From the NCBI RefSeq assembly GCF_001447785.1, contig NW_015172563.1:800150-864149 (forward strand): 64,000 nt of DNA. Reading direction: 5' to 3'. This stretch comes from Gekko japonicus (taxonomy: Eukaryota). Below the pieces are notes generated by a model. The model ran no database searches. It was not told the DNA's origin and saw only the letters and a program-made list of their open reading frames with translations. Shown here piece by piece: positions 17,077-57,869 of this stretch; positions within the stretch are counted from its first letter, which is position 1, and every line of letters begins with the position of its first letter. The position numbers were made by a program, and so were the translations under genes.

Positions 17077-17089
17077 AAATGTTTTTATT

Positions 17090-18968
17090 TTATTTTAATT
17101 TTTTTTAAGCCCCCGGAGGGGATTTTTTATTAATTTTTTAAACACTACAAAAACTAGAACAGGAAAAAGGGAAAGGGAAAGCTACATATAAGGGAGAAAG
17201 TAAAGAACCCACAACTAACTAAAAACCCAAGAGAGGAGATCTCCAACTAGCTTTTTATACTTCATTCACTTTTCATCTTTGTACTTATGAACTGTGTCAA
17301 TCTTTTAACCCTTTTAACTATCCCCAGTTACATTTAATTGCCCAATAACAGTGCCCCCCATCATCCCCTAGAACCCAAGTTCTCAAAGGCACAATTCAGA
17401 GTCCTTCAGCCTTTACTTCTTCTTCTCTCTCTTCCGCAGTTTGTAGGAACTTTTGGGGGCTGATGCCCCCTGCTCAGACAAAGAGTCCTCACCAGACGAA
17501 CCAGTTTCCAGCTCTCCACCGGACTTATTGTCCTCTTTTTTTTCCTCTCGTCCTCTGGCCTTCCCAGCTGCTCCTTTAGAAACTCTTGAGCTTTAAGAAC
17601 AGAGTCAATCTTGACCTTCTTCTCTTTGATCTTGAATATTACGCCTTCTGGAAACAGCCATTTATATCCAATTGAGTTTGTTTGGAGGAAAAACACAAGT
17701 TCTTTGTATTTCTTTCTGCATTGTCTTACTTCAAATGGAATATCCTTTAGCGTTCTGACAGCATTCTCCCCCACCTTCAGGGGTGTCGCAGCAACTGCTT
17801 TCAGGATAGCATCCCTGACGTGCCTCTTCGAGAATCTTACTACAATTTCCCCAGGCAGATTATTTTTCTTTATGTATCCTGAATATGACCTGTAGGCCAC
17901 ATCCATGTCGTTGAGTAGCAAGTCCGCCTTTATATCTGCTACTGGGGCAAGTAGCTCACTCATAAGTTCTTTAAGATTCTCTCCTCTTTTCTCGGGCACC
18001 CCTTGGAAGCGCAGGACCATATTAGCCTTATCCATTTGCACTTGCAGCATCTGATCTTCCAAAGATACAGTTTTCTTTTCCAATTTTTGTACTTTTCCCC
18101 TCACTTTCTGCATTGTCTCAGCCATTTCCTTTACTTTCTCAGCATCCTGCTTCATTACTTACATACTTGAATCAAATCCGTTATTTGCGTTTGTTGAGCA
18201 GTAATGCTTGTTGTCACAACTTGCAGCTGCTTTTGTTGTGCAGTAATATTCGCTGTTACAACAGACATCTGTTCTTTAAAGACATTGAGCTGTTCCAGCA
18301 GAGGGCGCATGACCTCTGTCATCGCCTTCGTCGTCTCACTGGTCGTTTTGGGCTTCGGGAACTCTAGTTTCGCTTTTAAAAGTTTCTCTTTGTCTCTGTC
18401 CCTCTTCCCCGCCATTTTTCTCGTTTGTTTGCTTTCACAATAAATTTTAAAGTCTCTGAATATGCGCTTATCTGTATAGCTCGATGGGTGAGTACTTCTG
18501 GGCAATTTCGTGTTTATTCTTCCACTCCCTCCCCCTTTCACTCAATGATTTATGGGCATGGGAGGCCTCCCTCCCACTACTCGCTTCTGCCATTTTGCCG
18601 CTTCGGGTAAGGAGTGTCTTTTTGTTTAAAAATCAGTTCTCATTTGACTCACATTCATAGTTGGTCTTCCGACCCCTCTTCATTCATCATTTCAAACGCC
18701 TGATCTCCTGAGCTTGATCCGGCTAGCTTCACTTGTACCATCAGGTCTCTCAGCTGGATGGACCACTGGAGCAAGGGGGAGCCTCGATTCTCTGGCATTT
18801 GGCCAGAGAAGAGGCTACCCCCTCAAAGTTCCTTGGCCAGGTGCCCTTCTCCGGGCTCCTGGGGTGGTTACGAGCCTGCTCACCCCCTCCATCCGCCAGA
18901 GCACGGAGACACCCCCGGGAGGTCCGGGAGGTGAGTCCGTGAGCGTGCCGCCATCAACCAGAAGTTCT
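17090..18968 (-). mobile_element. ORF1-only L1-like retroposon (HAL1-like), copy A
   Basis: 13-bp TSD AAATGTTTTTATT (17077-17089 / 18969-18981); frameshifted ORF1 18415->17406 with L1 ORF1p RRM/CTD-like motifs (LRFQGVPE, KDIPFE, YKWLFPEG); AATAAA and A-tail; no ORF2. Confidence 0.85.
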
Positions 18969-19289
18969 AAATGTTTTTATTAACAGCATCAAAAACAACA
19001 AAACAGTCAATTTTGGAATTAGTAACAAAAATAAAAAACAGAGCAAATTTCCATGCACAAGTCGACTACTGTCTTGGTATTCAGTTTAAAATAGTGCTCT
19101 CCTACCATCCTTTCTCAATACTAATAAGAAAAGCCTCTAGTTTGATATCTCTTGGATAGGATAAAATAGAATGCTAATTTAGCATTTCCACATGATGTTT
19201 CATACTTTGCAATAACCAGGCATTGTCCTTTGTTTTGAATACTGTTCAGTGGCCCCTTTAAATTCAGTTACTGTTCTTTGCCTCTACAA

Positions 19290-19429
19290 GTTTAGTCTCA
19301 GCAGTGGATATAATGATCAACCCAGCTCGCGGTAAGACACCAGAACAAGTGAACACCACTATGAGCTCAGTTATGGCAATAATTCTGTCTTGTTTTGAAG
19401 CTTCATTTAGAGGATCCTCATTGTTCTAA
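19290..19429 (+). pseudogene. ARG1: Arginase-1 pseudo-exon 8 (last exon)
   Basis: LVSAVDIM-INPARGKTPEQVNTTMSSVMAIILSCFEASFRG versus recalled human [42 protein letters not shown] (about 20/42 identical). Acceptor reads CAA instead of CAG, the Glu277 codon is missing, and it is convergent with MED23 as in mammals. Confidence 0.85.
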
Positions 19430-19801
19430 TTGCCGCGTTTCATATTATCAAAGTAGACTCTGAATACATATCATGGTTTAAGCTCTAACATGTTTCTAGG
19501 AGTTCATTTTATGAACTGCTGGTTAAGTAGATAAGCTGCTAAGTAGGTAATTTTATGTTTACTACAGCCACCGTCTCTCATTTTGGTACAAATGTGGTGC
19601 AGAGCCATATGATCAATTTTTAAAAATACAAGTATAAATTTATATCCAAGGGTTTAGCTTGTGAATTCAAATGAACATTTGGATTCTGAAAAAAACTAAA
19701 CTTCAGGGCAGCATTTTGTCTTCCTCTTATATACCAGTGAATGGCCTGGACGCACTCTGTCTTACTAAACTCATGAAGCTAATAGATAAAATGAATGGTA
19801 T

Positions 19802-21053
19802 TGTTGTCCTACGAGGCCCCTATTATGCTTTTATGAACTCATAAGTTATGAAAAACCTGACCTGTGCTAGTTGTGTGCAAAAGGGACTGAACTATAAGGT
19901 CGCCATTCAGACAGCTCTTCTTCTGGCTAGCCTGGGCCAGCTGCGTCTTTCTTCTTCTATCTTCCTGTCTTCTTTGTTCTCGGGTCGCTTTGCAGCTCGC
20001 CTGAATCCGTCCTGCTGGAAGCAGGGCCGGCAAAGAACTGGATGGTCAGCATGGGGATAAGCCCCTCCCCGCCCGGATCAAAGCCTGAAGCCGACCCTGA
20101 AGGAAAGGGAGGAGCTTATCCCAGAAGTACAGAATGTACCACGACACAACCATTGGAGAACAGTGTGTCCATGGGCCCTGTATGTCACCATCCCTCTTAC
20201 TTGCAGTGAAATGAACCAGCTTCCTAGCCACACACACACACAGCATTGAAAAGCCAGGCTGTTGCCATGCCAGGCAAGAACATAGGGGACCCAGACTCCA
20301 TGAAGGATCCCCTTCCTGTGCACGTAATCAACATGTTTGTCCCCACCTAATACATCACCTAGTTGAAACCGCAGACACGAGACAACAAGAGAACAATGCC
20401 TCTGGCCAGCAGAAGACATAATCCCATCAGGATGCCATTGTTTAACTTAGTTTCCCATTAGATTCAACATTGACCAGCCCTGTGAACCTTGGACCCCAGC
20501 CCCAGTCAACATATTTGGCCAAGGCAGGTAGCCAACCTCCAGCCCACCCCTCAACCTCCCTATAAAAGAGCTGTGCAGCACCAGCTCTCTCTCTCTGCTC
20601 CCCCACCCAACCCCTTCGTACCTGAAGTGTCGGACTCTTGGTTGCGCAGCCAGAGTCTTACCGTGAGCCTGCCGGTTCAGGACATGGACCCTTCCCCCAG
20701 TTATGGATCCCTTAACCCTCTCCTTTTTCCTGAGACTCACTCCTTCCGACTACAGGACAGGTAGAGTATCACCCATCATCGAAATCTCCTGCTAATGCGA
20801 ATGTGTTCTTTGTATTCTATCTATATTTCCTAGATACTGTGTAATTGTGTGTGTGTAAGTGTTATTGTATGCCTGAAATAAAATTAGTAAACAAAATCAA
20901 TTTATACTGTCATCAGTCTCAGCGTCTATTTGGCGGGTCTGGAGAATTCTGCACCCCTGTATACATAGATTCTTGCCCCCGTATTTGCCTATTGCCTGAT
21001 TTAAGCTCATGACTCCCCAAATTAAATAACGATTCAAGGCAATTTGGCTAACA
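19802..21053 (+). mobile_element. Solo LTR related to the 3.2-kb LTR
   Basis: TGTT...AACA termini, 4-bp TSD GTAT, TATAAAAG at 20561, AATAAA at 20877; shared GCAATT(T/C)GGCTAACA end. Confidence 0.82.
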
Positions 21054-21100
21054 GTATTACCCTCAAATAATTTGGATGAACTATGCATAAATAAATAATT

Positions 21101-21106
21101 TTTATT
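21101..21106 (-). terminator. Candidate MED23 polyadenylation signal
   Basis: AATAAA on the minus strand ~900 nt past the stop, at the end of an AT-rich, repeat-free 3' UTR-like stretch. Confidence 0.55.
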
Positions 21107-28100: not shown

Positions 28101-31100
28101 TGCAATAAAAACCAGCACAATAACACAGGAAACAATGCAATACTATTTGTTTAAAAGCTGCCTAATTTTTTTCACAGACATTACAATGACAGACCAGTTC
28201 CCTGTATAAGAAGTGCTCTGCTGATCAACTCCATTTTACAACAGTCCTTTTTCCTCTACAAAAATATCCTGAACAGCTCATTTTTACACATTCGGCAGTA
28301 AAAAAAGTAAAATGGAAAAGGTCATATCCTCCCCACCCTAATTTTCCTATTATATTTGTTAGCATTTTAGCGTCTCATTTTAAACATTATTTTCATCAGT
28401 GGTACAGGATTACTTGTCTTTTCAATTAGTCAGAATCAAGGCAACTTACAGGCAAGAATCAAGGCAACTTACAGGCAAGGCAGTGATAATCAGTCCAATT
28501 GCATTCATCCATGCTGTTATATTGTCTCTAGGAACTAATGGCTGACTGGAGAAAGTGAGATAAAAAAGGACTCATGTACTTAATATCAGCAGTTTATGGT
28601 AGAGATACATACCATTTTTAACATAAAACTGTCTCTATTTTTCAGAAGAACTTCAACCTACCTTTTCAGCACAACATTCAGAAGGGCATTTCCTACATCC
28701 TTTCCTGGAACAGCCAATGCCATGAGTTCAACACAGGTAACATGCAGTGCATGGGCAGCTGGGTTAGGAAACTCATTGAACCTCCAGTCACAGTTTGGGA
28801 ATGGTGACTTGCCAGCCATCGGTGAGAACGATTAAGGTAATCAACTGATATGACATAGGAAGCAGCTGCCATTACAGGGGCTGTTTCTTTTTTGGAGAAC
28901 TGCAGTGGTACAGGCTAGAGCTTCCATTTGGTCCTTAATATGTAGGAACAGACTGTAAGCTCAAAAATCATGGGATAGAAGGACAAGTCCTTTTATGGAT
29001 CAAAAACTGGCTAGTTCATAGAAAACAGAGAGTGAGTGTAGGTGGGCAATTTTCTCAGTGGAGGGTGGTAAGCAGTGGGGTACCGCAGGGATCAGTACTT
29101 GGTCCACTGCTTTTTAACTTGTTCATTAATGATTTGGAGATGGGAGTAAGCAGTGAAGTGGCTAAATTTGCGGATGATACAAAGTTGTTCAGGGTGGTGA
29201 AAACCAGTGAGGATTGTGAGGCACTCCAAGGGGATCTGTCAAGGATGGGCGAGTGGGCGTCAACATGGCAAATGGGGTTCAATGTGGCCAAGTGCAAGGT
29301 GATGCACATTGGAGCCAAAAATCCTAAATATAAATACACATTGATGGGGTCTGAACTGGCAGAGACTGAGCAAGAGAGAGATCTTGGAGTTGTAGTGGAT
29401 AACTCACTGAAAATGTCGAGACAGTGTGTGACTGCAATAAAGAAGGCCAATGCTATGCTGGGGATTATTAGGAAGGGTATTGAAAACAGATCAGCCAATA
29501 TAATAATGCCCCTATATAAATCAATGGTGAGACCTCATTTGGAATACTGTGTGCAGTTCTGGTCACCACACCTTAAAAAGGATATTATAGCTTTGGAAAA
29601 AGTGCAGAAAAGGGCAACTCGAATGATAAAAGGGTTGGAACACTTTCCCTATGAGGAAAGGTTAAAGCGCTTAGGGCTCTTTAGCTTGGAGAAAAGACGA
29701 CTGAGGGGTGACATGATCGAGGTTTATAAGATTATGCATGGGAAAGAGCAGGTAAAGAAAGAGGTACTTTTCTCCCTTTCTCACAATACAAGAACTCGTG
29801 GGCACTCCATGAAACTGCAGAGCGGTCGGGTTAGAACGGATAAAAGGAAGTACTTCTTCACCCAAAGAGTGATTAACACATGGAATTCACTGCCACAGGA
29901 AGTGGTGGGTGCTACAAGCATGGACGGCTTCAAAAGGGAATTAGATAAGCATATGGAGCAGAGGTCCATCAGTGGCTATTAGCCACAAGGTATAGCTAGG
30001 GGCTCTGGGGCAAGTGATGCTCTGTCTTCTTGGTGCTTGGGGGGGGGTCAACAGTGGGAGGGCTTCTAATGTCCTGGCCCCACTGCTGGACCTCCTGATG
30101 GCACTGGTATTTCTGGCCACTGTGTGACACAGAGTGTTGGACTGGATGGGCCTTTGGCCTGATCCAACATTGGCGTCTCTTATGTTCTTATGTTCTTATG
30201 TTCTTATTAACTATTATGTTGTATGTTCAGGCCATTCATGCATGGCTCATATATGCAGATCTGAGCAAAACACAGTGCAGAAACCTAGGTTACATAGTGT
30301 CTGCTGCTATTTTCTCTTCTAGTCATTTGAGCACCTTGGTACTATAGCGTAATCAATGTAGAGATTATGCATTTTCAAACAAATAATGATACGTATTATA
30401 CATTCTTAACATGTTTCCTCCACCCAAGATATTCCAGGTGGCTTGTTAAGAAAATGATTTGCCCCTGCTTCACATCCTTGATTTTTTTCTTGGCTAACAA
30501 TAATAATCTGAATGCCGCTCCTGAAAAGACAAAACTATGAATGGGTGGAGCGCAAAAAAAAGAAAAGCATCACAGCACAGCCAACTACAGATTAATTACA
30601 ATGCAAACAGGTGTCTCAATGGTTTTCTGATATTTTACCTACACTCACTATTATAAAAAAGGATATTATCGACCAGCCTTGCAATCAGTTTACAGTAATA
30701 TATGTCATCAGGGATCCATGGATTATCTTCTCGTGCATTCATAGCACATTTGAGGTAAATGTCACTCAAGCACCATCCTAGAGGCCGATTATCCTTAAGG
30801 GAACCAATGATGGCATGGACCAGTTTCCGTTTGAGGTTTGGACGGTCCCGGAGATGTCCTTCGTAGTAGTGAAGTGTATTGTACAAGTAGGTTACTGGAC
30901 GATCTGCAAGGAGACAACAGGGGTATTCACAAACTCAAAGCCAGGGTCGAGTACAGTCTGCACTACAAAAATGAAAATTCTGTACACAGGCAATTCAAAT
31001 AACACGACAAGGAATGCTCAATTTGTTGCTCTATAAATTACTAGCCTGATACCTGTGCTTCGCTATGGTATTTAACTTCCGTAAATCCAGTTATAATACT

Positions 31101-37100: not shown

Positions 37101-40100
37101 ACAACTCAGGGTATGTGAAGCCCAGTTATGAGGGGTAAAGCTCATGATAGTCTGAAGTATATCTTTGCACCAAGTTCCCTGAATAGAATCTGATCCTGTG
37201 AAAAAATCTGAAAAAGAACATGTAAAAGTAATAGAGTCTTCGTTTCATATAGCTTAAACATATACAATGAATTAGTAAAATGCCATTTCCACATTCTATT
37301 GACACCATATGCATGATTATTGTTCTGACTGTATTCCACCAGTTTCCATTGTTTGAATTTAAGTCTTGTGTTTCCAAAAGGCTCAAGATTCAGCTGAACT
37401 GAATCCAGAACACTCTACACAAAATCCACAGCACCATTTTATTCCAATCACAATGCCTTTACTGAAAGGCGGGGTTTCGGCGAGCTGATGGCGGCTGTGT
37501 CTCCTGGGATCTCCCAGGGAGGCGGCTCACAAACCAGCAGTTAGAGAGGGGGTGCGAATGTCCGCGCCCCCCAGGGACCCTTGCGAAGGGTCTCTAGTCA
37601 TGGAGCGCTGAGGGTCGCCTCTTTCCCGGCACGCTGTCGGGAAATTGAGGCGTCTCTTTGCTCCAATGGTCTCTCTGCTGTGTTCCGGCAAGGACTAAGC
37701 TACGCACACCCCATCAAGCGAGGGGCGGTCAAGCGGCAAATAAGCATATCTGTCGGCGAGATCTACTTGATCTACATATGAAGAGTGAGTAAAGTTGAAA
37801 CGAAACAACAAAGCGAAAGCCCCCCCCCCCCGGGGAAAAGTGAGGGGAGAGAGGGGACTCTCCTCCGCTAAGAACTGTTTATAAGCGTTACAGAGGTAGA
37901 AGAAAGGGGGGACATGTTTAAAAGCAGCAATGGACTATACGGAGAGATTCCAGGAGGCAGTTAAGCGTTGAAGCAAGTTTTCGGGACTTTGGTAAACTTT
38001 GTAAAAGTAAACATCCTTAAAAATGGTGATGGACAACGTAGTAAGAACAAGCAGTGATATCCAAGCTTTCTCCAGGAAGTGGAAGAGCTGCTGGTTAACC
38101 ACCTGACTGGAAATAATCATAGACTCTTGCAAACTGTGTCTTAAGCCTTTGTTCCCTGTTGGTATAAACGAGGTACTATGCAAGAACTGTGCTACATGTC
38201 AGCTGTTGCTTTTAAAAGGACTGTGTTAATATTGGAGAAGCGTCTAACCAATGATCATAGGGGCTTCCAGGATCGAAGAGGAGAGTCAAATGGGCATTTG
38301 CAATTCAAAGGGCCTGTATGCAGACCATAAGCAAGACTTAAAGCGAAGGAGTATTCTCCATGGTTATATCCTGATTAAGTCTGCTGGGCAATAAGGTGAC
38401 GAGACTCTCTTCAAGTCGGCCAGTGAAAAGCAAATTGGAATGACCCCTATGATTGAAGGCAAGAATTTAAGCGGAACAGTCCTGGAAAAAGGAGAAGGGA
38501 CTTTGTTTTGAGATGGCCAGTTCCTGATACAGCAAGATGGTGCCACAGGGAAGAAGAAAGAGAAAAACAGCAATGGAAGAGAAAATGAGATTGTGTAATA
38601 TCTACTGAGGGAGATTTATTGTTAATTTGCTTTTAATGGTGGAGGGAAAAATAATGGTTAAATGAGATGCCATTGTTCTCTGTAATGTGTGTCTAAGTTA
38701 AATAGCGATTCTCCTGGACTACTCTTCATATAGTCAGATTTGTTAGGATGTTTTTACAAGCTATGATGATGACTGATCACTCTCAATGTTAAAGAAAGCA
38801 AATTTTTTACAAGCTGCATGTGACCTCCAACCCTTGGGTTTTTAGTGGGTTTTCTTTTCTTTCTCCTATAGTGTGTAGATTCCCTCCCTAATTTCACTGT
38901 AGTTTTTAGTAAATGCAAATAAAAAATCCCTTACAGGGGGCCATTAAAAAAACACAATGCCTTTACTGAAAACTGAAATACATGGGGGGGGGGATCTAAC
39001 CTTACATCACAGTAGGAAATCAAGAATATTCATGTTGTAAGCCACTTTGAGTTCCACGTGGGAGAAAGTTGGTTAATAAATGGTTTAGATATAAATACAG
39101 CTCTTTGTATAATGAGTAAAAGACTAGCCTTCACCCCACTTGCTCAGGAGCATCTCTGTTGTTTCTCCACTGTAAGAATAATGGATGTGGATTTCTTTTT
39201 CAAATCTGAATACCACTGTCAAACATTCAGACTCTTCGAGGTTTTATGCTTTTTTACCTTTTTCATTTACTAAAACAAATAAGAACTTTGTTAATAAATT
39301 GGAGAGAATTTTATAATTTCATCTGGGTAACCTTTATTATTGTGAAAACTTTTGTGAACAATCAGTTCTGCTTATGCTGTTTTCCTTTAGTTGGTTATAA
39401 CTGAAAAACAACTTTCTTGATCTAGACAGGATGTATCATTAGGCTGCAAACATGTACCACTTCCTGGATTAGAAGCTGGAAGCACAAATCAGTTATGCAT
39501 AGATATAGGTGCCAAATAAGAATGCAATCACACTGCGCTGCTTTTGGTTTGAGAATGGGATGTGCACTCAAATGGGTATTCAAATATTCATTCTCACACA
39601 ACTAGTAAAATATTAACACTTTATGTTTAGCTACAGTTGAATGGAGGCAAAGTTTTTCTTATCCTGAAACATTAACTTGGCTAATTCATCTTGTTAAGTA
39701 TAACGTGCCGTATTAATGAACTACATTAATCATTTTAATAATGTAGAGAAAACATCAATGACTAAAAAAAAATTGAAATGATTTTTATTGCTTTTATCTC
39801 TACATCCTACATTCTACACACTACAACCTAAAATACAGAGTAGGCAAGGATCATTGATGGTCTAATTTCGATTTTTTGATATTTCCCTAGTACTTAAGAT
39901 TACAGTATAATAGCTTTGTAGAGAGAAAGCATACAAAAAAAGTAAAATTAAATAGAATAACATAAATGTGTATTATTACGCATAAAGTACAAAGGAGATT
40001 CTCAGATCTTCATTTCGTTGCTTTCTTTCCTTTACGTTTCTTCTTCTTCTCCCAGGGGAGTTTAACTTTATATGATCTAGGGGCGGCTGCCCCCAGTTCA

Positions 40101-43100
40101 GATTCAGAGTCAAAAATCTCGCCAATAGATGAAGATGAGCTTATCTCATCTTGTTTGCCTTTATCTTCTATGGCGTTGTTGTCCTCTGCTTTTCCTTTTT
40201 CCTTCGCTGGGCTTTGATGGTGCTTCAGAAATAGCTCAGCCTTAGTAAGAGAGTCAATCTTTTCTTTTATCCCTTTAAAGTTGAAAATAAGTCCTTCTGG
40301 AATAATCCATCGATAAAGAATTGAATTTCCCTGTAAAAATGATGTGACATTTCTATATTGCTTCCTCTTCTTCTGTATCTCAAATGGAACATCTTTTAAA
40401 ATTTTTATTTCTTCTCCTTGGATTTTTAGGGCTATCCCATTAGTCACTTTAAGTATCAAGTCTCTTGTTGATCTTTTAGAAAATTTTACAAACATTTTCC
40501 CTGGCAGATTATTTTTCTTGACAAATTCTGGATACGTTCGATAAACCATGTCCATATCTGCTTGTAATAATTCACTTTTACAGTTTGCCAGGGGAGCCAA
40601 TGCTTCACTTAAGATCTCTTTTAGATTTTCATCTTTCTTTTCTGGGATGCCTTGAAATCTTAAAACATAATGATCTTTCCACTTGTAGCTGTAATAGTTA
40701 TTTTTCGGAAGCCCTTTCTTTATCCGCTGATTCCATTCTTTGGTCCAATGCTTTTGTCTTATGGTCAACCTTTTTCAGCTTTTTGGCTGTCTTCTCTGTT
40801 TTTATCTTAGTTTCTTTAAGTTCTTTCTGTAGAGCATCAAAGTTCTTGTTGAGGTTAGTCATCTGGTCCAGCAGAGGGCACAGTGCTTCAGAAATCGTAT
40901 CGGCTATGTCTGTAGCTGGTTCCGGTCTGGTGACTGGTGATGTTAAGCTGGTAGTTCCTGTAGACGATTTCCCTCTGGGTGACATTTCCCCCCTCGATGA
41001 GACATTGTTTATGTTAAAGGTAAAAGTTCATAGAAGTTCTGAGATTCTTCTCTGCAATATAAGATATAGCCCTCTGCACTCGGCGTGGGTTAGGTGACAT
41101 TCTTGCTTCAAAATTTCGGCTTACCTTTTACATTTTGTTACTTTTCTTGCTGTTATGTCTAGGATAGGGTTGTTCCTCCCCCTCTGGGAGGGTTCCCCCC
41201 CCTTCTCTAGATTTAGGGTTTCGCCATCTCTTTGCCGGTTCCCACTTTAGCGCTTATTATTTTACAGTTTCATCACTCACATTTCTTGTTGATAGTTGTC
41301 AGTAGTATAGAGAAGGTCTCTGTTGCTTAGATCCTTTGCTCGCTCTGGTTCCAGAAAGCGCCTCTGAGCGCCATTGCTGGCCTCGGGACGGCGGAACCTA
41401 ATGGGGCAAAAAGGAGCCTCAATCCCTTAGCCGCGGCTCTGGGAGTGGCTCCTTTCGTGCCCCAGGCTAGAAGCCCCCTACAAGTGCTCCAGGGGAGGCT
41501 GAAAACGTCTGGTCTCCCACCCTGCCACCCTGATACGGATTGCACCCATCGGAGCTCGATGAGGTGTGTCCGTGCACAGGTCACCAAAACCGGAAGTCCT
41601 CAATAACTCTCAAAATTTTGAAAGATCTCAGTACTGCATTAATCTTTTGCTCTTTTTATACCTTCAAGAATTTTTCTGTTAGTGTTTATAACATTGTGAA
41701 AGAGTGTTACCTGTAACATGAGTCGCTCTTGCCAAAGTCAAAATAAGTGCCCTGTTGAGTTCCTCCGATTCTGCTGAAAGTACTGTTTTTGGTTCATTAA
41801 GGAAGCGAGTAAATTGTGGCTGGACCTCAGAGCTACCCAAGGCTGTGATCAGCCTCAGAGCTGTACTTTCAACACTGTAAAGAGAAGGTATGAGCACAAA
41901 ATGTATTTATTTTGACAAATGCAGGTAAAAAAGAGTAGCATTTTGGAGTCATTGTTTCAAATAAGATTTCAGTGTTGTGGCTTATATGAATTCACTCTGA
42001 GATGACCAGGACACATTTCTCTCTGTTTATATTATTATTTTCCCCCAATTGAAAAAAGAATATGTAAGGCACAACCAAGTCAGTGCTAAGAGAATTGGTA
42101 GAGGTCATTTCACACTCAGCCCAAACCACAGAGTACAGTCAACTGGTTGCTCAACTGATCCCTACTTACTGATAAGTATATTTCTATCATATGCTGACAA
42201 ACATCAATTGGTCTCATTTACAATTTCTATATTTTAAGGGTTTGCATTCCAGGTATTTTAAGTGCATACAAAAAAATTAGCTCAGTGATTTGCCTGTAGA
42301 AGAGCACTAAGAATCAGGCTTCACTGTAAATGACATTCTACTTTCCACTTTGCATGTCTGCTTACTATTTGTAAGTGGTATATGAAGTTGAGTGATGTTT
42401 TAGTAACAGACTGAAGAAAAGTACTTTCTTTACCTGCCCTTAAACAGTCCTGGCTCCATCCAAATGAGTATATTACAGCTCGTTACTATGGGAATTAGTC
42501 TTGCTAACAGAGCATTCAAGCCTTTTTTCTAGTCTTGTCTGCTTTTGATAATCTGAGCTTTTATCACTGCAATCGTAAACAGAGATACACACTTCTTAGT
42601 CCATTGAAGTCAGTGGGCTTAGAAGGGTGTAACTCTGTTTAAGACTGCATTGTATAACAATTCAAAATGTTATTTCCCCACCCTCTTCTATAGTCTGCAA
42701 AAAATGCTTTCACACATTGGGAGACTACATTGTCTAGAGGGTATGGGTCTGAATGCAGGAAATCCAGGTTGAAATTGCAGTCATAAATCTTAGTCGGTAG
42801 GATTTCTCACATTCTAAGTGGCTCTATGCTTTCACATGCAAGAGGTTTTCAGAAGCCCCCAGCACAGGATCTGTAGTGTTTGAACTGTTTTATTCTTGTT
42901 CCTCTCCCACCAGTCTCCTGATGTGTGCTGTGCCTCCAAAACAGAAATGGCAGTTTGTGGAGACAATACTTACCACAGATGAAGCTGATTCTGGTTGGTC
43001 TGTGGCACTGCAGCTAGAGAATGAAGATTACTCAGCAGCTGGACCCTGTAATGAGGCTGGATGTGGTGCATGCGATAGCTGAACATCTCCAATAGAGTGT

Positions 43101-46100
43101 GCAAGATTCCCCAAGCATGAGACTTAAAGACAGTGGGCAGAAGCTGACCTAAGAAGAATACACTAATGTCAACTGTGTTCTAAAGGCAGCATTTGAGCAA
43201 AAGTTATCATTTTTACAAGCACGAACATACAGAGCCTGGCAAAATCTGCTTAGCATTATAATATTCATAATCTACAACTGTAGTAAAATCTCAGCATAAG
43301 AAAGTTGCAATCCATCCAATAAGTAGCTTATTATCATGCAATTAAACTGAATTCATTAATACCATCAAGTTTCCTGCACAGGATCAGAAAACAGGAGATC
43401 CAGTTTAAAGATAAATCCGTTCCAACACAAAGCCACAAACATGCTGTCCCCAATGTCTGTAGCTGTTAGCAGAATAAACCCTGGAAACAAGTTGCTTGTT
43501 CAAGTCTTAGCCCACAAATTCAGTCAGGTGGCTAGGGAAGTCACTAGCTCTCAGCCTGCCCTATCTGATGAAGACGGGGGGCAGATAAATTCAGTTGGCG
43601 GATCCATGAGAAGGAGAAGAAAGCAGGAAAAAGGGAGAGGCTATGGGGACATTCTGGGAAGGGAAGGAGGAAATACTGGAGAAGGGGGAAAAGAGATGCA
43701 CCTTGCATGTCCTTGTGGGTTCTCTGCTTTCAATTTTATATTAGGCATTTTCCAAAGTGTATACCAGAGAAAAAAATTTTATTTGCATGTGCAAATTAGC
43801 ACTCTACTAAGACTGGTTCATTTATAGCTTCCAGTTGACAGCAGAAATCAAATAATCAAATGCTCTTACTGATAAAACCTTTGATGCCCAAAGATTCTAT
43901 TTCCATATAAACTAGCAGACGACTGTATGTTTCCACAAGAGCTGGAGCCAAGGCCAAACTGGATTTTGCATGAGCCAGTTTGATCACTCTGGTAGCTATG
44001 CTGTGAATAAGGCTGGAAGAAAAAAATATTTTATTTTCAAAAACATATCTCTGAAGCTACCAAGAAGTTAGTATTATTATGGATAGGTTTGTAGCAAAAC
44101 AAAATAAACCTAGCTTGTCCGTAGCTAACACTACCGTACCTCATCTTGGCATGAACTGTAAGCGAATCCAAGAGATTCATTGGCAAGGGTGTGATGGACC
44201 CTGAAGCCATGCAGTTGGTTCCTGGGAGAGGGATCCTCATGTTGCCATTCCCATAAATTGTTTCTACTAGAACACCCATGGGTAGCGTGAAGCATTCCGA
44301 ATTGGTGGAATAAGCATTGCACAGCAAAGCAATCTTGTAGTCATTCATCTGCAAGCTTTTATTCCTTAGGCTCTGTTGCAAGAATCTGCACACCCAAAGA
44401 AAGAAAGGGGAAAAAATGATTATAACATAAAATGTTTGTGTTAAGAGTTCCAGCTGGGTGATCAAATCATACATGAGAATTAAGGCAAACTCCACTTTAT
44501 TTTGAAGAAGCCTACTGGTATACAGCTATTAAGAGTGAATTATGCAATCCTGGCTTATATTCAAATGGCATATAAAAACCTTTATTCTGCTACATCTCTG
44601 CTTAGATTCACCACTTTTATGGTGACACACATTCAAGTTGTTACATTTTTCACTGTGCTGCTTCCCCCCCCCCCCCCCCCCATTGCAGTGATTTCTTAGC
44701 TTCCAGTCTTGACGAGCGTTGCTGTAAAAATATTAGCAAGGTAAGAATCACCAGAAGGCTGCCATTCATCCAGTAAATGCATTATCAGCCAAAGCTTACT
44801 CTGTATGCTGCCTGCTTGGCTGCTATTGGTCAGCTGCAATAAACGGAAGGGACCTGAGTAACGGAGCCCAGGGCAAGGCAAACTGCTGTAAAATGAGCCA
44901 ACTGCCAGGCTGTTTTGCTTCATTTCCTAAACTGTATTCTGAAATAAAACAGATCTTTTACAGCTTGCACCCCCGCTTTCTCTTTTGCCACATTCCAGAA
45001 ACTTGTTCTTGCTCAGAAAGAGGGGGTGGCGGAGAGCTTGGAAAAAAGCACACAATCATACCAAGGTCATTTACTCATTCAGTCTTCCCTGGATATAAAG
45101 TGAGAGTGCTCTTTACGGGGAGAAAGGTATGACCGATTATAGGTGAGTCATGAACTGCTTTTGACTGTAACAATGTAGAGCAATTTCTACTACATATGCT
45201 GGAAAAGAGAATAATAGCACACCATTAAGTAACTTTGTTTGTCCTTTTGCCCCTTAGAATTACCCTGGAGTTGCAGTCCTGCTTGTTGAGCTATCAGTAC
45301 ATGGGTTGGGAGATGTGGAGATAAGGGAGTAAGGGCAGTGTCCTGAGAAAGCACCGTCAACAGCTGAATGCTATTACTATTTCTGCCTGCAAGACGAGGG
45401 ACTGTAACGGAACAAACTGGGATCACTGCATTATGGTCCCAATGTAAACCATTGTTAGTTGTTCAGGTACAAGGAATCCCAGTTTCATACCTATCACACA
45501 AACGAGTTTGTTTGGCAGCTGACATTCTGATGCGGTTTAATCCAAACATGGTTTCACCATACCTTCTGAATGCACCCTTCTTGTATTTTAAGCCACCTTC
45601 CACAGTGGGATTTCTTTTATTATAAAGCACTGAGCGTGGTCTTATGGAAAAACAGCATAGAACTGCCGTAAATTAAATGAAGCTATTCATATTCTGTTAC
45701 CTTTAATACTCTGCCTCCCTCCAGTCCTCCACACCCACCACTATTTGTTACTTTCTCCCCACTCCTCAGTTTGCAATTAAAATGGAAAAGTGTATACTCC
45801 CTTGGGACAGGGACCCAGCTTCAGTGCTTTATGTCTGTGAGAGAGCTGTCTCTGTTTAAGTAGGACCAGGAAAAAGACTTCTGTGCTAGGACAGCAGCTG
45901 GCAGGAAGGAGCAGGCTTTGAAAGTTGCCAGTGGATCAGGGCACCATGGATACTGTCTGCTGAACAGCTACAATATTTTCTCATCCTACTTTTACAGACG
46001 GAGTGCACAGTACACTAAATTCCTGTGCGCCTTCTACTATACGTTCCGGGGATTTCACCCAGGAATAAGAAACAGCACTTACTCATGGTGAAGCTTGAGA

Positions 46101-49100
46101 GAATGAGGGATAGGAATCTGAAGTTTGGAATTGTCACTGTGAGCCTTTCTGTTCAGATGTATCCAGATACAGGTCATTGCAAAAGCATGCGTAGACTGGG
46201 GTTTGTTAATATCAGGCACAGGAATACACTGAGGAAAGAAGAAAAATGAATTCATTCTATTCAACTAGCATGATGCTAAGAATTCCCACGTAGGTATTTG
46301 GAATTGGTAAATCTTAATTTAGCAATGAACCGAGTTTGGAGACTGTACATCTGTGCAGGCAACTGTCCTTGGAAATTAGTAGGCATGTACTTACAGGCCT
46401 CTGCCTCACAGATCTTTCCAGTGACTAATTTTCAACCACTCTGCACAAGAATCAAGTGTCATAAGAACATAAGAACATAAGAGATGCCAATGTTGGATCA
46501 GGCCAAAGGCCCATCCAGTCCAACACTCTGTATCACACAGTGGCCAGAAATACCAGTGCCATCAGAAGGTCCACCAGTGGGGCCAGGACATTAGAAGCCC
46601 TCCCACTGTTGACCCCCCCAAGCACCAAGATGACAGAGCATCACTTGCCCCAGAGTCCCTATCTATACCTTGTGGCTAATAGCCACTGATGGACCTCTGC
46701 TCCATATGCTTATCTAATTCCCTTTTGAAGCCGTCCATGCTTGTAGCACCCACCACTTCCTGTGGCAGTGAATTCCATGTGTTAATCACTCTTTGGGTGA
46801 AGAAGTACTTCCTTTTATCCGTTCTAACCCGACCGCTCAGCAATTTCATGGAGTGCCCACGGGTTCTTGTATTGTGAGAAAGGGAGAAAAGTACCTCTTT
46901 CTTTACCTGCTCTTTCCCATGCATAATCTTATAAACCTCAATCATGTCACCCCTCAGTCGTCGTTTCTCCAAGCTAAAGAGCCCTAAGCGCCTTAACCTT
47001 TCCTCATAGGGAAAGTGTTCCAACCCTTTTATCATTTGAGTTGCCCTTTTCTGCACTTTTTCCAAAGCTATAATATCCTTTTTAAGGTGTGGTGACCAGA
47101 ATTGCACACAGTATTCCAAATGAGGTCTCACCATTGATTTATATAGGGGCATTATTATATTGGCTGATCTGTTTTCAATACCCTTCCTAATAATCCCCAG
47201 CATAGCATTTGCCTTCTTTATTGCAGTCACACACTGTCTCGACATTTTCAGTGAGTTATCTACTACAACTCCAAGATCTCTCTCTTGATCAGTCTCTGCC
47301 AGTTCAGACCCCATCAACGTGTATTTATATTTAGGATTTTTGGCTCCAATGTGCATCACCTTGCACTTGGCCACATTGAACCCCATTTCCCATGTTGACC
47401 CCCACTCGCCCATCTTTGACAGATCCCTTTGGAGTGCCTCACAATCTTCACTGGTTTTCACCACCCTGAACAACTTCGTATCATCTGCAAATTTAGCCAC
47501 TTCACTGCTTACTCCCAACTCCAAATCATTAATGAACAAGTTAAAAAGTGTCAGAGGCAAATCTGCATAAAAAGCAAACCGGGATCGGCATACCTTGTGT
47601 GTTAATGATACTTGCAGTGGTTTGCAGGGTAAAATTACTTACTGAAATATTAAATCCTGACCATATTTCAATACAACAGCACTATGGCAGAACCCAAGTT
47701 CACATGATTATTCTGAAAAATCCCAGCAACACAAAATGTAGGATTCAGATCAGAACAGTGTTTATTCAGCAAGTGATACAACCTTACATAGTCATGAGCA
47801 AGTTGCATTCAAGAGGGAAAAAGAGAGAGTAAAAAGCTCTTTTCATCCTCAGTCAGGATGGCACCCTAAACCACACCGCCTTCTGTCTGGAACTGCTACC
47901 CAATCCATTTCTATTAAGCCACAGCCTTCTCATTTTTCAAATGTCTCCCCAAACACTTCTTCTTTAGCAAAACCTGTTCTGCACTATCACAACTTTTCCT
48001 ACCCTGTAAACTGATCTGGCTTTATCCAAAGAAGGAAGGTGTGAAAATAAGCAGACCAAGCTCCACCAACAGAATGTTATTAAGAACAACGTGTTCATCA
48101 GTAAACAAAACCCCAAGAGGATCAGCTGCACTATTTATGACCTGAAACACAACAAACCTTTCTGAACATTGTTCTTGCATCGAGTCAACAGCAAATGCTC
48201 CACTCTTAGCTACACGAGTATCTAGCCTTTTGTCATAACAGCTTTGTTGTCTTTATTCCTTCTTCATACATGTTGAAAATTCTACAATTCATTTTTGTTC
48301 TTTACAAACTAACTTGTGCTCTTTACAAACTAACTGAAGTTTAGAAGGGTCAGGTCTGAATTCCTGTTTTGGTGTTTGTTTACCTGTAGAGAGAAGGCAT
48401 TATGCTAGATTTCTCTACACACACAAACTACTGACCAAGATGGCAGTCATCTGGCATGTCTAGCAATATCCTTTCTACAGTTTAACTGCTCTACCTAGAA
48501 CCAGAGTTCTGCACCTTTTCCTAATTTATTTTAAGGCTTTCTTTTTTACAAGAGGGGGACATCTTATAATTCCTCTTTCCCTTTTCTGAAAACCCCCACA
48601 GCCTTGCCCCTTTTCCTGCTTCCTTCTCTTCTTCCCACACACCAGCCAATCTACCTTTATTTGTCCCCATTTTCAACTTTCTTTTCGTCTCTCCCGGCAG
48701 CCTCTCCCTGGGAAAATGCTGGATGGTTCCAGCTGCTGGGCCATCTGGACTGCAGCCAGTTGCATGGTGCTGGCCCCTAGGCCAGGCCTTATTGAGAATT
48801 AGATTAAATACTGAAGAAACNNNNNNNNNNNNNNNNNNNNNNNNNNNNNNNNNNNNNTCTAACACGATTTTGATTCACTGCATCTTTCTTTGTTACTGTT
48901 CTATGCATTCTGATGAACTATCATTTGGGACGCATTTACAAATACTGGCTCTGACCTTTAGATACAGCTATGAATGTAATTGTTTCTCCTGCCTTAAAGA
49001 TACTCTTGACACATGTCCTGTCACCTACCTGTAGCTATCTAAATTTAATAGTGTTCCTTTTTATGTTGCCAAGACTGCTTTGCTTCTGGTTTTTCTTGGC

Positions 49101-51730: not shown

Positions 51731-54700
51731 CTGCAAAGCAGAAGTCAGATACAGTATTCCAAAGACTAGCAACGAGTGTCTTTAATTATATTCATTTCAG
51801 TATGGTTTCTTTGACAGAAGCTTGGGAAGCATGAAATGAAGTCTAAACATAAAGGTTTACAAGGTAAGCTAAGACATTAAAACTGTGTTATGTTACAGGT
51901 CACAGTATATGTATTTATATATTTTAAATTTCATAGCCTTTAGAAGAGACACAGCTGTGAGGAATTATAGTTCATTAAGCATATACTTTACCCTCATCTC
52001 AGCATTCATAGAATATCTAAAAAGACTACATTTTAGAAAGGTCTGTTTGCATACCTAATGTTTTAAGGCTAATATACCTATGGACTTGGATTTGAGAAAT
52101 GATTTTGCAATTAATGGGCTTCAGATAGATCATCTCCAGATGCTTTGGCAGCTCAGGTACAAAAAGGCATTCCGTGGGAACCCTGACTCCCACTTTTGGG
52201 CTACCGCTCATCAGTTAACACACCTTCCTTGGTTTGCAATGTTTACCAATTAGGAAACTGGTGGCTCCCCTTAATTTCACTCTTCATCTAGCCAGACTAT
52301 GTCATGTGTGTAGTTCCTCTGTACTTTGGCTATGGATATCTGAGCCATTTCTGAACGTGCCATTTTAAGATATGGTTTCAGAGTTTTCCATGGTATATCT
52401 GTAACATAACACAGCCTTAATAGAAAGAAAAGGTATTATTTTCAAAAGACAGACACAGAAAAGGAACTGAGCTGCTCAGAATCTAACCATGAAAATGCTG
52501 GGTCCCTTTCTAGAGGCAAAAAAGGGGATTTGTTGTTTTTTTTAAAAAAAGCAAAATTTGCCAAGATACCCAAATATGATTTCAATATATTTTTGTGCTC
52601 CTCTTAACAAATGGCAGGCAAACTAAAAAGCCCCTTTGAATTGCCAAAAAGGAAAAAGAAGATTGCAGAAAGGAGATACATATTCTAACCTCAACCAACG
52701 TGGGTTGCTTTTTGCCATGAAAAAGGGATTATGTTTCTAAATTAACAATACAATGCAAGAATGGCAAAACTCTGGACAAACTCTAAGAACAGCACTCCCT
52801 CTTTCACATGCTCTTTGCCAGCTCAAAACTGCCAAGCTATAAATCTAGCTGTGCTTTCTTGAAGCATGCTTAAAACAGAAGACTTCTAACCAAAAGGAAA
52901 GCATTAGTTGCTTTTGACCCTCTCTGTCAAAAATACAATGCCGTTATCACAGATCAACCACATTACAGATTTACAAAGAGCAATATTAACACCACCAGTT
53001 GAGAATACTTTTTTCCAAATGCAACTAATTATGAAGCAGAGCAGAATGCAACAGACAACACTACAAACTATTTCATGATCCAGCATGCAAAACTACAGTG
53101 TACAGGGCTTGAAATTCACTATGATTTGATAGGCAGAGGGCAACTCTCCAAGTCCCCAACAATGCAAAGCTATATCAGTTTTAAATCAAGTTATATAGAA
53201 GGACAGTTAATGTAAATATCAGAGAGATGGTATTTCTAATGAAAAAGAAAATTAAACTTGTTCTTAAAATTTTAACAGTTATGGACTATAAAAACATTCT
53301 TGGCTTTTGAAGCACTCTAGCCTGACCAGGAAATGGGAATCAGAAACAGGAAATGTAAGTAGGAGCAGGCCAAATTCTCAGTTTTTCTCAGCAAAATCTA
53401 CAGGACAAAATATAAAGCCGGTCAAAACTGCAAGATTGGTAGAGCAACATACTCACTACACAACAACTATGGTTACTGCGAGCAGATTTAACACTGGTGT
53501 GTGAGACAGCCCCCCACTGCTCAGATACCTCCCCCTCCCCTGTAATGGGTTCTTCCTTATCTGACGCTGAACTGCCAAGTATCAAGGCTGGGTTCATGTA
53601 TTATGCTGAATGCAGTGATGACACTATAATTTCTATAAAATAAGTGAAAGCTTCCACTAACTCCTATGAGGGAAAATAAATAAAAGACTGCACTTGGGGA
53701 GAACACTGTACTGGTGGCAGCACCCCCCCCAAAAAAAAAAACACACACACCCCAACACCCCACAGAGACGCACTTTGAGCAGCCCAACATCCATGCAAGT
53801 ATAATATGCCTTCTGGAGCAGAACACTTGCCCCATCTTTTATAATTATACACATTAGAGTAGGGTTTTTTTTAAAAAGGGGGCTATATGACAATAGTTTC
53901 TAAAGTGACTATCAGTATAATCATAAGCTGGTCTACTTAGAATCCTACTTAAATCTACTCAGTGGGGCTTACTTCTAAGCAAAGTGTTCTTAGGACTGCA
54001 CTGTAAATCAATGAAGTTTCAAAATTATATGTACAGAAAGCTGAAAAGGTAAAGTCTTCACAAGGCAGTATAATTTCACCCAAGGAGCATCTAATAATTA
54101 TGGAAGCAAATAGCATATACTAACGTTCTTGCCATTTTCTATAGCACCAATCTGTCTAGAGAAAGCTAGCTGCCATATACTTAATTCTATAACTCAATTC
54201 ACGTGGCGCTATGAAGGGCAAAATCAACAAACTGCTGCAGTGTTTACACAACTGTCTTGCATGGCTCTGGCCTGCTTTCCTATATTGCATGACAGATCTT
54301 GGAAGAATAATGTGACCTGAACAGCCCATGAGCAGCGGCACTGATACCAACTTACAAATGGCTATGGTCCCAGAAGTACAACACACTGAAGAAGAAAAAA
54401 TCTACCAGGGACATATTTCCTATATATCACAGAGAAACGACCTGCGAAATACGTCAAGGAGAAACCAATGGACTGATTGTTTACTGAGACAGAGAGGAAT
54501 TCACCAGCTCATAACTGTATCAATCAGTACAGCGGTTTTTGCTAACAATTGAGATAGCTCAGCTGCTTCTACATTTGGTTGCCTGAACCAATATTACAGT
54601 ATTATTACTGCAGGATCCATCACAGAACGTAACAAGAAAGAAAAAGTAAAGCTAGCAACTGACAAAGTTATGCCCACAGCTGTAAGTATGTTGCATTTCT

Positions 54701-54764
54701 ATAGGAGTGCAGGAAAACCAGAGAAAGTGACGTTGGTGCAGAACTTGGCTTCCATTTATAATTT

Positions 54765-54765
<1 letters not shown>

Positions 54766-54822
<57 letters not shown>
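54766..54822. repeat. (TA)n(CA)n microsatellite
   Basis: Seen directly; lies inside the TSD of copy C. Confidence 0.95.
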
Positions 54823-54825
<3 letters not shown>

Positions 54826-55084
54826 CTAAAAAGGAGAGAATTTTATTGCTTTTAATTTTCAGAAAAAAAGGGGGGTATATAGTGGGGTTAAGAAAAGAGT
54901 GAGTGATGCTCATATTAGTATGTTAATCTTTTGTTAGTAGTAATCATATCTTCTTTGGCTTCTTCCGTGAGTTGATCAATCGTCTTTCATCTTAACCAGT
55001 AAAAAATAAAAATGTTAATGTGTTAATAGTGTCCTCTTGGTTTATTGTTAATAAAGTCTTTTTATGCGCTTTCTGAACCAATCT

Positions 55085-56047
55085 TCATGTTCTGGGCTGT
55101 CTTCCTTTTACATCTCTCAGATTGTAAGATGGACCCTTCGCTGCTCCTTCATCTTCTGGATTCTTGTCTCCCTTCTCTGAGCCGCTGTCTTCTTCGTTGC
55201 TAAGTACTTCCCCTTTAGCGAGTGCTGCTTCCTCTGGACTGGCGTGTCTCTTCAAAAAGTCTTGAGCTTTGAAAATGGAGTCAATCTTTTCCCTTTTATC
55301 TTTAAACTTGAAGATAAGTCCTTCTGGAATCAACCATCTATAGCTAATTTGATGGTTTTGTAAGAACAAGGTCAGTCCTTTATAGGCCTTCCGCTTCATC
55401 CGAATTTCAAATGGAACATCTTTTAAGATTCTAACTGTCTGCTCTTCAATCTTCAAAGGCATTGATGAAGACGCTCTTAAGATTTGATCTCTGATCCTCT
55501 GCTTAGTAAACTTGACCACCACTTCTGCCGGCAAATTATTCATCTTTGTAAAATTGGAGAAGGCTCTGTACACCACATCCATCTCCTTGCTTAATTTATC
55601 CGCTTCCCAGCTGGTAAGTAATGCCAAAGCCTTTGCTAGCATACTTCTGAGATCTTCTTTTTCAATTTCTTTTATGCCTTGAAATCGGAGAGTTAAGTTT
55701 GTCTTTTCCATTTGAAGCATCAATAATTTTTTATCTTGCATTTCTTGATGTTTCTCAATTTTATTGACCACCTTCTTGACTTTTAGAGTCTCTTCCGTTG
55801 AAACCAGACATTTCTGCGCGATTTCCTCCATCTTCTTGGCTGTATCAGTCAACTGTCTCTGCTGGTTGCTGAGAACACTTTCCATGCTCGACAACGTTTG
55901 ATTTATTTTTTGCATTTGCTCCAGCAGAGGGCGCAGTATCTCGCTTTCCTGTTGATTGACAGCCGGCTCCACAAGGAGGGAGCCAGAACCGGAAGTTCCT
56001 CCCAGCTTCTTCGGCAGCTTCTCCGGGAACTTTTTTTGCCCCGACAT
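55085..56047 (-). CDS. Intact 320-aa L1 ORF1p-like RNA-binding protein (coiled coil, RRM, CTD)
   Basis: Heptad-like N-terminal half, then LRFQGIKE...MDVVYR...VVVKF...LKDVPFE...YRWLIPEG; homologous to the ORFs of copies A and B. Confidence 0.8.
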   Translation of the reverse strand: MSGQKKFPEKLPKKLGGTSGSGSLLVEPAVNQQESEILRPLLEQMQKINQTLSSMESVLSNQQRQLTDTAKKMEEIAQKCLVSTEETLKVKKVVNKIEKHQEMQDKKLLMLQMEKTNLTLRFQGIKEIEKEDLRSMLAKALALLTSWEADKLSKEMDVVYRAFSNFTKMNNLPAEVVVKFTKQRIRDQILRASSSMPLKIEEQTVRILKDVPFEIRMKRKAYKGLTLFLQNHQISYRWLIPEGLIFKFKDKREKIDSIFKAQDFLKRHASPEEAALAKGEVLSNEEDSGSEKGDKNPEDEGAAKGPSYNLRDVKGRQPRT

Positions 56048-57869
56048 CTTTGTTTTATTGTTTACTTTTAAAAGTTCATGCCGCGCAGCTTAAGAATGAG
56101 TCTTTCTGCCTCTCCTTAAACAATTCACCAAAAGGTAACACCACTCTTCCAAAATCTCACTCCCCCCTTCTTCTTTCTGGTAATACAATCTCAATTTGTT
56201 TGGGAGGGGGGCTCCCCCCTCCTCCCTTGCACTTTTTCGATAGGGGGGAATGCGCTTTATCTCTTTTCCCACTTTTCCGATCGTCAACTCACGGTTTCAG
56301 CCGTTCACTTTCTCTTTTAAATGTTCTTCCGCTTCATCACTCTGCGATGTCTGGCAGCTCTGCTAGTCCCTGTGCAGGGCACAAACACGGCAGGGCCATT
56401 GGGGCATGGGGCGAGCCTCAATTTCCGACCTTCGGGCCGGTAAAGAGGCACCTCCCCTGTGCGCCCCAGTTCGGAGCCTTACTCTAAGGCTCCTTAGGGT
56501 CTCCGCTTGTGCAGATTCCCCCCCTTAACCGCGCGTGGGCGAATCACCTCCGGGAGCATCCCAAAGTTGCGACCGCCATTCGCAGAGACCAAACCGGAAG
56601 CCGGCTTCCATTTATAATTTCTACCAGTTACGTAAGCTTGAGAGCATGTGGGCAATGCCTGCTAAAACCTGAATCTATAGAGGTGCTTGAATCAGATTTT
56701 CAGTGGTGATGCATGACTTTGGATTGGGTCCACGGCAGCATTTCCATGAGCCCAAGGACTTCCGCCTGCAGAACACAACTCTCTCACCTCCCCAACACTG
56801 CAAACCCAAATACATCCAGAAGCAAAGCCGAGTCAACATCCATACCTTTTTATGACTAGCAAACCCAGAATAAATTATGCAGAAAAATACATATTCAATT
56901 ATGCAAACTGAAAGAAATCTGCTCACAGAATCCTGCATTTCTAATAATAAAATTAGGACTAGGGATGGGCACGATTTGGACCACAAACCAAATTTTGTCA
57001 CAGACTGGGGTCTGGTCCATGGTTCATTTGCAGTAAGACACAGGGACGGGAAAACAAACCTGCCCCAAAAACTGGAATCAAGAACCAAAAGGGTGAGAAG
57101 AAAGTCTAATGAAGGGCCAATATTAAAAACCTAGTTAAAACTTATAATATATAAAAATACACGCATTTATTAGAAAGACAGTTAAAAACATACATAAGGG
57201 CCCAATGAAAGCCTTGTAAAAAAAGTGTAGCCTAAACACAAGGGCCAATAAACATGACCTGACACGTTTCTGCACTATTGGGGCCTTCTTCAGAGGTCAA
57301 ACAATATTGAGGTACATGTAACAATAATACATATTGCAATAAGATAACCAATAAGTGAATATTGGACTAAGAAGAGGAAGGTTAAGCAGCAAGAGCTAAA
57401 GACACATGACAAAGATGTTTGTGAGGCCTCAAAAGGTGAAAGTCATGTGTCTAGTGCCAAACGCACAGTTATTGAATTAGAACATCTTCCAATTTAGTTC
57501 CAAAAAGCACCTGTGTGGCTATCAAAGTCAGAGCTAGAGTGTCCTCAAGCAAACAGCTGGCAGCAGCTCCAAGGCCAGCAGAATAGAAAGGGGGAAGATC
57601 TGATATCTTCCTTCCCCTCCTTTCTGCTGGCAGCAGCTTCCCAAAGCCAGCAGAATGGAAGGGGAGGGAAGATCTGACCCCCCCTTCCTCTTTCTATATG
57701 TAATGCTTGAGGAAATTCTGTTTCACTGTATCTGAAGAAGTGTGCTTGCACACAAAGACTTATACCTTGAATAAAACTCTGCTGATCTTAAAGGTGCCAC
57801 TGGACTCAAACTTGGTTCTACTGTGTCAGACCAACACAGCTGCCTACCTGGATCTAGCATTAACTATGT

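Follow-up and report, generated by a model that had tools for sequence, protein, structure and literature searches.

One known retroposon with only the first open reading frame (ORF1) of the L1 element is HAL1 ("half-L1"), a mammalian L1 derivative that encodes the ORF1 protein (ORF1p) and nothing else, and that arose several times (PMC5753468). The literature on HAL1 (Smit 1999; Bao and Jurka 2010) is cited here as it is reported in PMC5753468 and PMC5786205. Other long interspersed elements (LINEs) that are non-autonomous but have an ORF1 include HeT-A of Drosophila (Jockey clade) and Ag-Sponge of mosquito (CR1 clade) (PMC5786205). Here we analyzed a stretch of 64,000 nt from the genome of Gekko japonicus (NCBI RefSeq assembly GCF_001447785.1, contig NW_015172563.1, positions 800,150 to 864,149 of the forward strand), which is referred to below as the window. 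Three ORF1-only units (A, B and C) and a fourth element (D), all within this window, were read in detail. We consider it likely that A, B and C are HAL1-like, non-autonomous retroposons and that D is a derivative of this group without an open reading frame (ORF), all of them mobilised by the L1 ORF2 protein (ORF2p). They would therefore represent a known kind of element in a new host group, with a fixed GTGAGT hexamer, a 3' hairpin and an ORF-less sibling as the notable features. Full-text searches of the literature returned no description of a HAL1-type element in squamates; Repbase and Dfam were outside the scope of this search, so that the families may already be catalogued there.

The units resemble HAL1 in being L1-derived and non-autonomous, in encoding only ORF1p, in keeping both the 5' and the 3' end, and in presumably using L1 ORF2p (PMC5753468 and PMC5786205). 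They differ from HAL1 in their squamate host, in comprising at least three deeply diverged lineages with one architecture, in a conserved 5' untranslated region (UTR) with GTGAGT at a fixed position, and in a small hairpin past the poly(A) signal. With autonomous L1s of lizards and other vertebrates they share an ORF1p made of a coiled coil, an RNA-recognition motif (RRM) as well as a C-terminal domain (CTD), an A-rich ORF, a GC- and CpG-rich 5' UTR that is conserved among divergent families, and a pyrimidine-rich 3' UTR ending in AATAAA (PMC5381506). In contrast to autonomous L1s, which are 5.4–6.4 kb long, the units lack ORF2 and measure 1.8 kb (PMC5381506). Their 5' UTR (~550–590 nt) is longer than that of one of the two clades of L1 in Anolis (0.23 kb) and shorter than that of the other (1.3 kb) (PMC5381506). 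HeT-A and Ag-Sponge are similar in that an ORF1/Gag-like gene is kept and a partner reverse transcriptase is needed (PMC5786205), but they belong to other LINE clades and hosts, and HeT-A is telomere-specific. Finally, the mammalian protein L1TD1 is ORF1-derived, domesticated from L1 ORF1 and without ORF2 (PMC4161310); however, it is the product of a single-copy host gene, whereas the units described here are dispersed and each has its own target-site duplications (TSDs).

Elements A (17090-18968, 1879 nt), B (39779-41599, 1821 nt) and C (54766-56602, 1837 nt) are located on the minus strand, and D (37468-38952, 1485 nt) on the plus strand. A, B and C follow the same plan: a CpG-rich 5' UTR leads into a single ORF1 region, after which come ~220–275 nt of 3' UTR and a final AATAAA. 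TSDs of 13–24 bp and a terminal AATAAA were found in all four elements, and the tails were mixed. Exact duplications flank A (13 bp; 3' copy 17077-17089, partner 18969-18981), C (19 bp; 3' copy 54747-54765, partner 56603-56621) and D (19 bp; 5' copy 37449-37467, partner 38953-38971), in agreement with the lengths given in a preliminary description of this locus that was made from the sequence alone. For B, that description had proposed a TSD of ~9 bp and an end at 39764, which would give a length of 1836 nt. An imperfect 24-nt duplication (3' copy 39755-39778, partner 41600-41623) fits better, its 18 matches out of 24 being equalled by only 4 of 198,216 random 24-mer pairs taken from the window at the same spacing. 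This duplication puts the end of B near 39779, directly past the AATAAA at 39784-39789, and leaves B almost tail-less. The view of A, B and C as complete, TSD-bounded units of near-equal length was confirmed, as was the CpG richness of the 5' ends (59–61% GC and a CpG observed/expected ratio of 0.49–0.79 over the first 300 nt, compared with 0.27 in the window). Every copy was also thought to end with AATAAA and a tail; the signal is indeed present in 4 of 4, but an A-rich tail only in A and D. The tail of C, (TG)25 followed by (TA)4 (54766-54822), sits directly past the hairpin discussed below and ahead of the exact 19-bp TSD, and could be a replaced tail, a 3' transduction or a product of slippage. 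No further copies were detected by blastn within the window. None of the four elements is interrupted by the assembly gap at 48821-48857. It is separated from B by ~7.2 kb and from C by ~5.9 kb, so that only the spacing of these two units becomes an estimate.

The sole intact ORF1 is that of C (55085-56047, minus strand), which encodes 320 amino acids (aa). An ORF region is present in A, B and C, as initially reported, but it is broken in the first two: A has two frame breaks, one near 18156 and another in an A-run near 17540, and B has an in-frame stop near 40698 in addition to frame breaks. The C protein begins with a disordered N-terminus, from which a helix at residues 29-116 (the coiled coil) leads to an RRM and then a CTD; its tail is disordered and has acidic and basic residues. 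In A, the coiled coil contains an additional tandem duplication of ~14 residues (18180-18290, minus strand; two similar "...ITAQQ.Q" units) that is absent in B and C. Coiled coils of L1 proteins are known to be unstable, and the duplication in A fits this behavior.

When ORF1 was used as a single sequence to search PDB, L1 ORF1p was found only at E values of 0.12–0.16. A profile built from A, B, C and two Logan proteins matched human L1 ORF1p (2ykp) with an E value of 4.7e-7, and the match extended from the last part of the coiled coil through the RRM into the CTD. The AlphaFold model of the C protein (pLDDT 71.5) showed an 88-residue helix followed by two alpha/beta domains, in keeping with the order of domains in L1 ORF1p, and the best ten Foldseek matches to this model were chains of the human ORF1p trimer (2yko, E value 2e-10). 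Residues 29-285 of C were also modelled as a homotrimer, with a score of 0.71 compared with 0.01 for the best control. The runs had a contact agreement of at least 91% and a partner pLDDT of at least 81, and the contacts were in register, with a spacing of 3–4 residues along residues 37-115. In the calibration of this score, which used two copies and not three, 21 of 30 proteins solved as one-chain pairs attained the mark applied here, compared with 0 of 23 single-chain structures; the trimer model may also have passed because the solved trimer is remembered by the predictor. The gene of A, B and C is an L1-type ORF1, as the preliminary description had it, and its homology rests on profile and fold, not on Pfam.

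Pairwise identity of the ORF1 proteins of A, B and C is 46–50%, and their DNA can be aligned only in the RRM-CTD region (68–76% identity). This block of 147 codons contains no indels; the proportion of synonymous differences (pS) is saturated (0.76–0.83) and that of nonsynonymous differences (pN) is 0.28–0.30. The lack of indels, the saturated pS and a pN of ~0.29 together indicate that the protein has been under purifying selection through a long divergence. It had been suggested that A, B and C share about half of their residues and are separate old lineages, not recent duplicates, and the protein identity and the saturated pS bear this out. A dN/dS comparison had also been proposed; constraint is evident in that pN is far below pS, but no ratio is given because dS is saturated.

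The distance from the stop codon to the last AATAAA is ~275 nt in A, ~221 nt in B and ~238 nt in C, which leaves no space for ORF2. In addition, the endonuclease segment of a snake L1 had no match anywhere in the window, and no reverse transcriptase domain (RVT_1) was found in A, B or C, the RVT_1-bearing ORFs of the window being located elsewhere. Thus, the earlier statement that these units have no room for ORF2 holds for all three, with neither endonuclease nor reverse transcriptase detected within 221–275 nt.

Element D had first been taken for another copy with an ORF region, which turned out to be incorrect. Its longest plus-strand ORF has 66 aa and is located within the 5' UTR, and the interior contains none longer than 50 aa. 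No remnant of ORF1 was found in D by tblastn, by two profile HMMs with filters off, or with 151 related proteins, and Rfam gave nothing above threshold. The 5' UTR of D is homologous to those of A, B and C by alignment, its last 120 nt are 71% identical to the 3' end of A, and an interior of ~700–900 nt separates these shared modules. Because the two 19-bp TSD copies are identical, divergence since insertion is calculated to be at most ~8% (95% bound). With so little divergence and no trace of ORF1, D must have been ORF-less already at insertion; it was inserted as a non-coding RNA. Insertion without any ORF argues for mobilisation in trans, and D is the best indirect support in the window for trans mobilisation of RNAs with these ends.

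The four 5' UTRs align with conserved blocks. The motif GATGGCGG occurs ~15–25 nt from the 5' start in A, C and D, and by eye it looks like the site for YY1 in L1s of mammals. An ETS-like candidate promoter motif, also read by eye, is the CTTCCGG with which the 5' end opens, and a block near +200 that ends in CCAATGG is common to all four elements (degenerate in A and B). Each element has a single GTGAGT, a consensus U1 or 5' splice-site hexamer, which lies at element position 317 in A (18647-18652), 320 in B (41275-41280), 311 in C (56287-56292, minus strand) and 318 in D (37785-37790). This splice-site-like hexamer has stayed in place although the sequence around it diverged. No spliced joints at GTGAGT were found in raw RNA-seq reads of the same species (runs X21-X23), whose local depth was <1. 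At the very 5' start, B carries GGACTTCCGGTT, the conserved 5' terminus of zebrafish L1s (PMC5381506), and A and C show decayed or close forms of this motif.

At the other end, a hairpin is predicted just past the last AATAAA in A (17110-17121, CCCC/GGGG), C (54823-54836, minus strand, CTCCT/AGGAG) and D (38927-38940, CCCT/AGGG). The stems are 4–5 bp long, differ in their bases, and have predicted energies of -7.7, -8.5 and -4.9 kcal/mol, respectively; three sequences are too few to prove that the structure is conserved. B is cut off ahead of the hairpin position. Homology among the 3' UTRs is patchy: it was seen between A and D, between B and A/D just ahead of AATAAA, and between B and C around AATAAA.

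These 3' ends could also be read as signals for a LINE other than L1 (of the CR1, L2 or RTE type), which would recognise the hairpin and a microsatellite-like tail and mobilise the elements. The hairpin lies just ahead of the tail in A, C and D, with different stem sequences, the tail of C is (TG)n, and CR1-like copies are frequent in the window. Two larger LINE 3' parts were found, one at 29032-30207 on the plus strand (RVT_1 E value 1.3e-13; ORF 29032-29982) and the other at 46460-47560 on the minus strand (RVT_1 E value 1e-5; ORF 46676-47560). Both have a (TTCTTATG)n octamer repeat ~200 nt further on, and neither ORF had a match in PDB, L1 ORF2p included. The octamer tails and the lack of an L1 ORF2p match suggest that the two probably belong to one CR1-like family. 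However, this octamer differs from the ends of the elements described here, in which the TSDs of 13–24 bp, the AATAAA at the end and, for A and D, the A-rich tail are marks of the L1 type, and the protein is of the L1 type as well. Mobilisation by a non-L1 LINE is therefore very improbable in our view. More reverse transcriptase fragments are present at 8897-10430 on the minus strand (RVT_1 E values 3.4e-8 and 1.4e-6), beside an assembly gap at 11279-11366.

Transcription was assessed with the above raw reads and with assembled contigs (run X1) of the same species. Raw reads cover the body of C (~54835-56575) and almost none fall in the flanks (maximum 1.6, in one 3'-side bin). Most of the reads over C are 90–95% alike to it; relatives of C are transcribed, and C itself hardly or not at all. 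Read cover is unbroken from ORF1 through the 3' UTR in these C-related transcripts. Within C, the depth of X1 contigs reaches tens to hundreds, whereas it is ~2 in the flank; this roughly suggests a repeated family. The 5' junction of C is spanned without a difference by one of these contigs, showing that the C insertion is present in that sample too. Two joints in X1 contigs (55279-56118 and 55888-56527) were considered as splicing and rejected, as they have no splice-site ends; they were taken as relatives or mis-joins.

A search for homologous proteins gave only two matches, both short Logan contigs. A profile search of 1.84 billion representatives yielded 931 proteins at E values up to 1e-3, and all named proteins among them were from squamates (Gekko, Varanus, Micrurus, Pseudonaja, Pituophis and Pantherophis). 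What these matches trace across squamates is the ORF1 protein type, not the ORF1-only architecture. Several relatives (P0004, P0011, P0016, P0043 and P0065) carry names such as apolipoprotein A-IV-like, myosin-6-like, UBE2E2 isoform and PRDM9. Host-gene names of this kind on squamate RefSeq/GenBank models with an L1 ORF1 are probably misannotations of transposon ORFs.

The existence of NCBI gene models for related proteins in Gekko and snakes could also mean that the copies are not transposable elements but processed pseudogenes, derived from one host gene or several that had themselves arisen by domestication of L1 ORF1, as in the case of L1TD1. Retrocopies of equal length would likewise result if transcription of a host gene always started and was polyadenylated at the same sites. 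However, ~50% protein divergence together with a common architecture would require several old parent genes, and a CpG-rich promoter-like region accompanies every copy. The contrast in contig depth between C and its flank, rough as it is, also argues against a host gene, and the model names (apolipoprotein, myosin, PRDM9) are evident misannotations. We therefore attach hardly any probability to a domesticated parent gene.

The Pantherophis gene model P0043 combines this ORF1 type with an Exo_endo_phos domain (an L1 endonuclease), which indicates that the type occurs also in L1s with ORF2. A quick maximum-likelihood tree was built from the 70 best matches, of which only those of 240–600 aa were kept, with P0043 trimmed to its first 345 residues. 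Among the 57 sequences of this tree, A, B, C and the Logan protein P0001 formed one clade (96% SH-aLRT support) that stands apart from the clade with P0043. The tree leaves out the ORF1s of complete L1s of Gekko japonicus, and the A/B/C/P0001 clade may reflect only species.

The main rival explanation is that the copies are by-products of complete L1s, of which several families would have a strong poly(A) site in the spacer between ORF1 and ORF2 and so give rise to short ORF1-only mRNAs that are occasionally retrotransposed. This would imply that no self-sustaining ORF1-only lineage exists. Premature poly(A) signals abound in the L1 ORFs of lizards, and the spacers of clade 2 L1s measure 270–384 nt (PMC5381506). 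The presence of five AATAAA sites within C and the endonuclease-bearing P0043 are consistent with such an origin. In contrast, three deeply diverged lineages end at the same distance past ORF1 and show patchy homology of their 3' UTRs, and a hairpin past AATAAA is present in A and C, the two ORF1 units whose 3' end is complete. The ORF-less D uses the 3' module it shares with A, the window contains three such units and zero pieces of L1 ORF2, and A, B and C fall in one clade. On balance, we consider a by-product origin unlikely.

We therefore favor HAL1-like retroposons that depend on L1, and their cycle could be as follows. Transcription would start from an internal CpG-rich promoter, for which CTTCCGG, the YY1-like GATGGCGG and the CCAATGG block are candidates, and the RNA would be polyadenylated ~220–275 nt past ORF1. 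This RNA would encode its own trimeric coiled-coil/RRM/CTD ORF1p, which is presumed to coat it. Insertion would be carried out by the ORF2p (endonuclease and reverse transcriptase) of complete L1s through target-primed reverse transcription, generating TSDs of 13–24 bp. D would be a further reduced relative that consists of the 5' and 3' modules only and is mobilised as a non-coding RNA.

Several observations weigh against this scheme. The window contains no complete L1 or L1 ORF2 fragment, so that the partner is unseen, and only three to four copies were read, so that a family-wide absence of ORF2 is a presumption. Two of the three ORF1 copies (A and B) are dead, and few RNA reads are at least 99% alike to C, which points to little or no expression of this particular copy. 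The tails are inconsistent: A and D have A-rich ones, that of C is (TG)n, and B has hardly any. The L1 target preference TT/AAAA is only loosely matched, in A and C. Also, a comparison of the C ORF with the Pfam family Transposase_22 (PF02994) had been proposed; the ORF missed the gathering score, and neither it nor A or B had a match to this family even at an E value of 10. Among the relatives, Micrurus P0006 passes the Transposase_22 threshold (24.4 vs 22.4 bits), and P0003 and P0009 are just below it.

With regard to genomic context, an ORF at 44037-44495 on the minus strand matched Pfam Med23 (E value 8.7e-24, profile positions 460-541), which places the window within MED23, a gene of the minus strand. 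A, B and C have the same orientation, so that at least B and C would be sense insertions that bring strong poly(A) signals into introns. Selection usually acts against insertions in this orientation. A 70-nt unit is present twice (79% matches) at 57556-57695, just upstream of the 5' flank of C.

A further and more tentative possibility is that the ORF1-only state is old and self-sustaining, that is, that a squamate half-L1 lineage has split into families with saturated synonymous sites and has all along retained its own ORF1p under purifying selection, a conserved internal promoter, the fixed GTGAGT and the 3' hairpin, while giving rise to ORF-less parasites such as D. We regard this as somewhat doubtful at present; if true, it would mean a long-lived "half-LINE" clade beside L1, unlike the short-lived deletion derivatives of mammals.

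For squamate genome annotation, the relatives found here indicate that ORF1s under host-gene names are probable transposon ORFs. The window also offers a natural contrast for the role of ORF1p toward an RNA: beside one intact ORF1 and two dead ones it contains D, which shares the ends of these units but has no ORF. To our knowledge, HAL1 has so far been treated as a mammalian oddity. If the ORF1-only group of squamates proves to be diverse and abundant, this design would arise, and could persist, wherever L1 ORF2p acts in trans.

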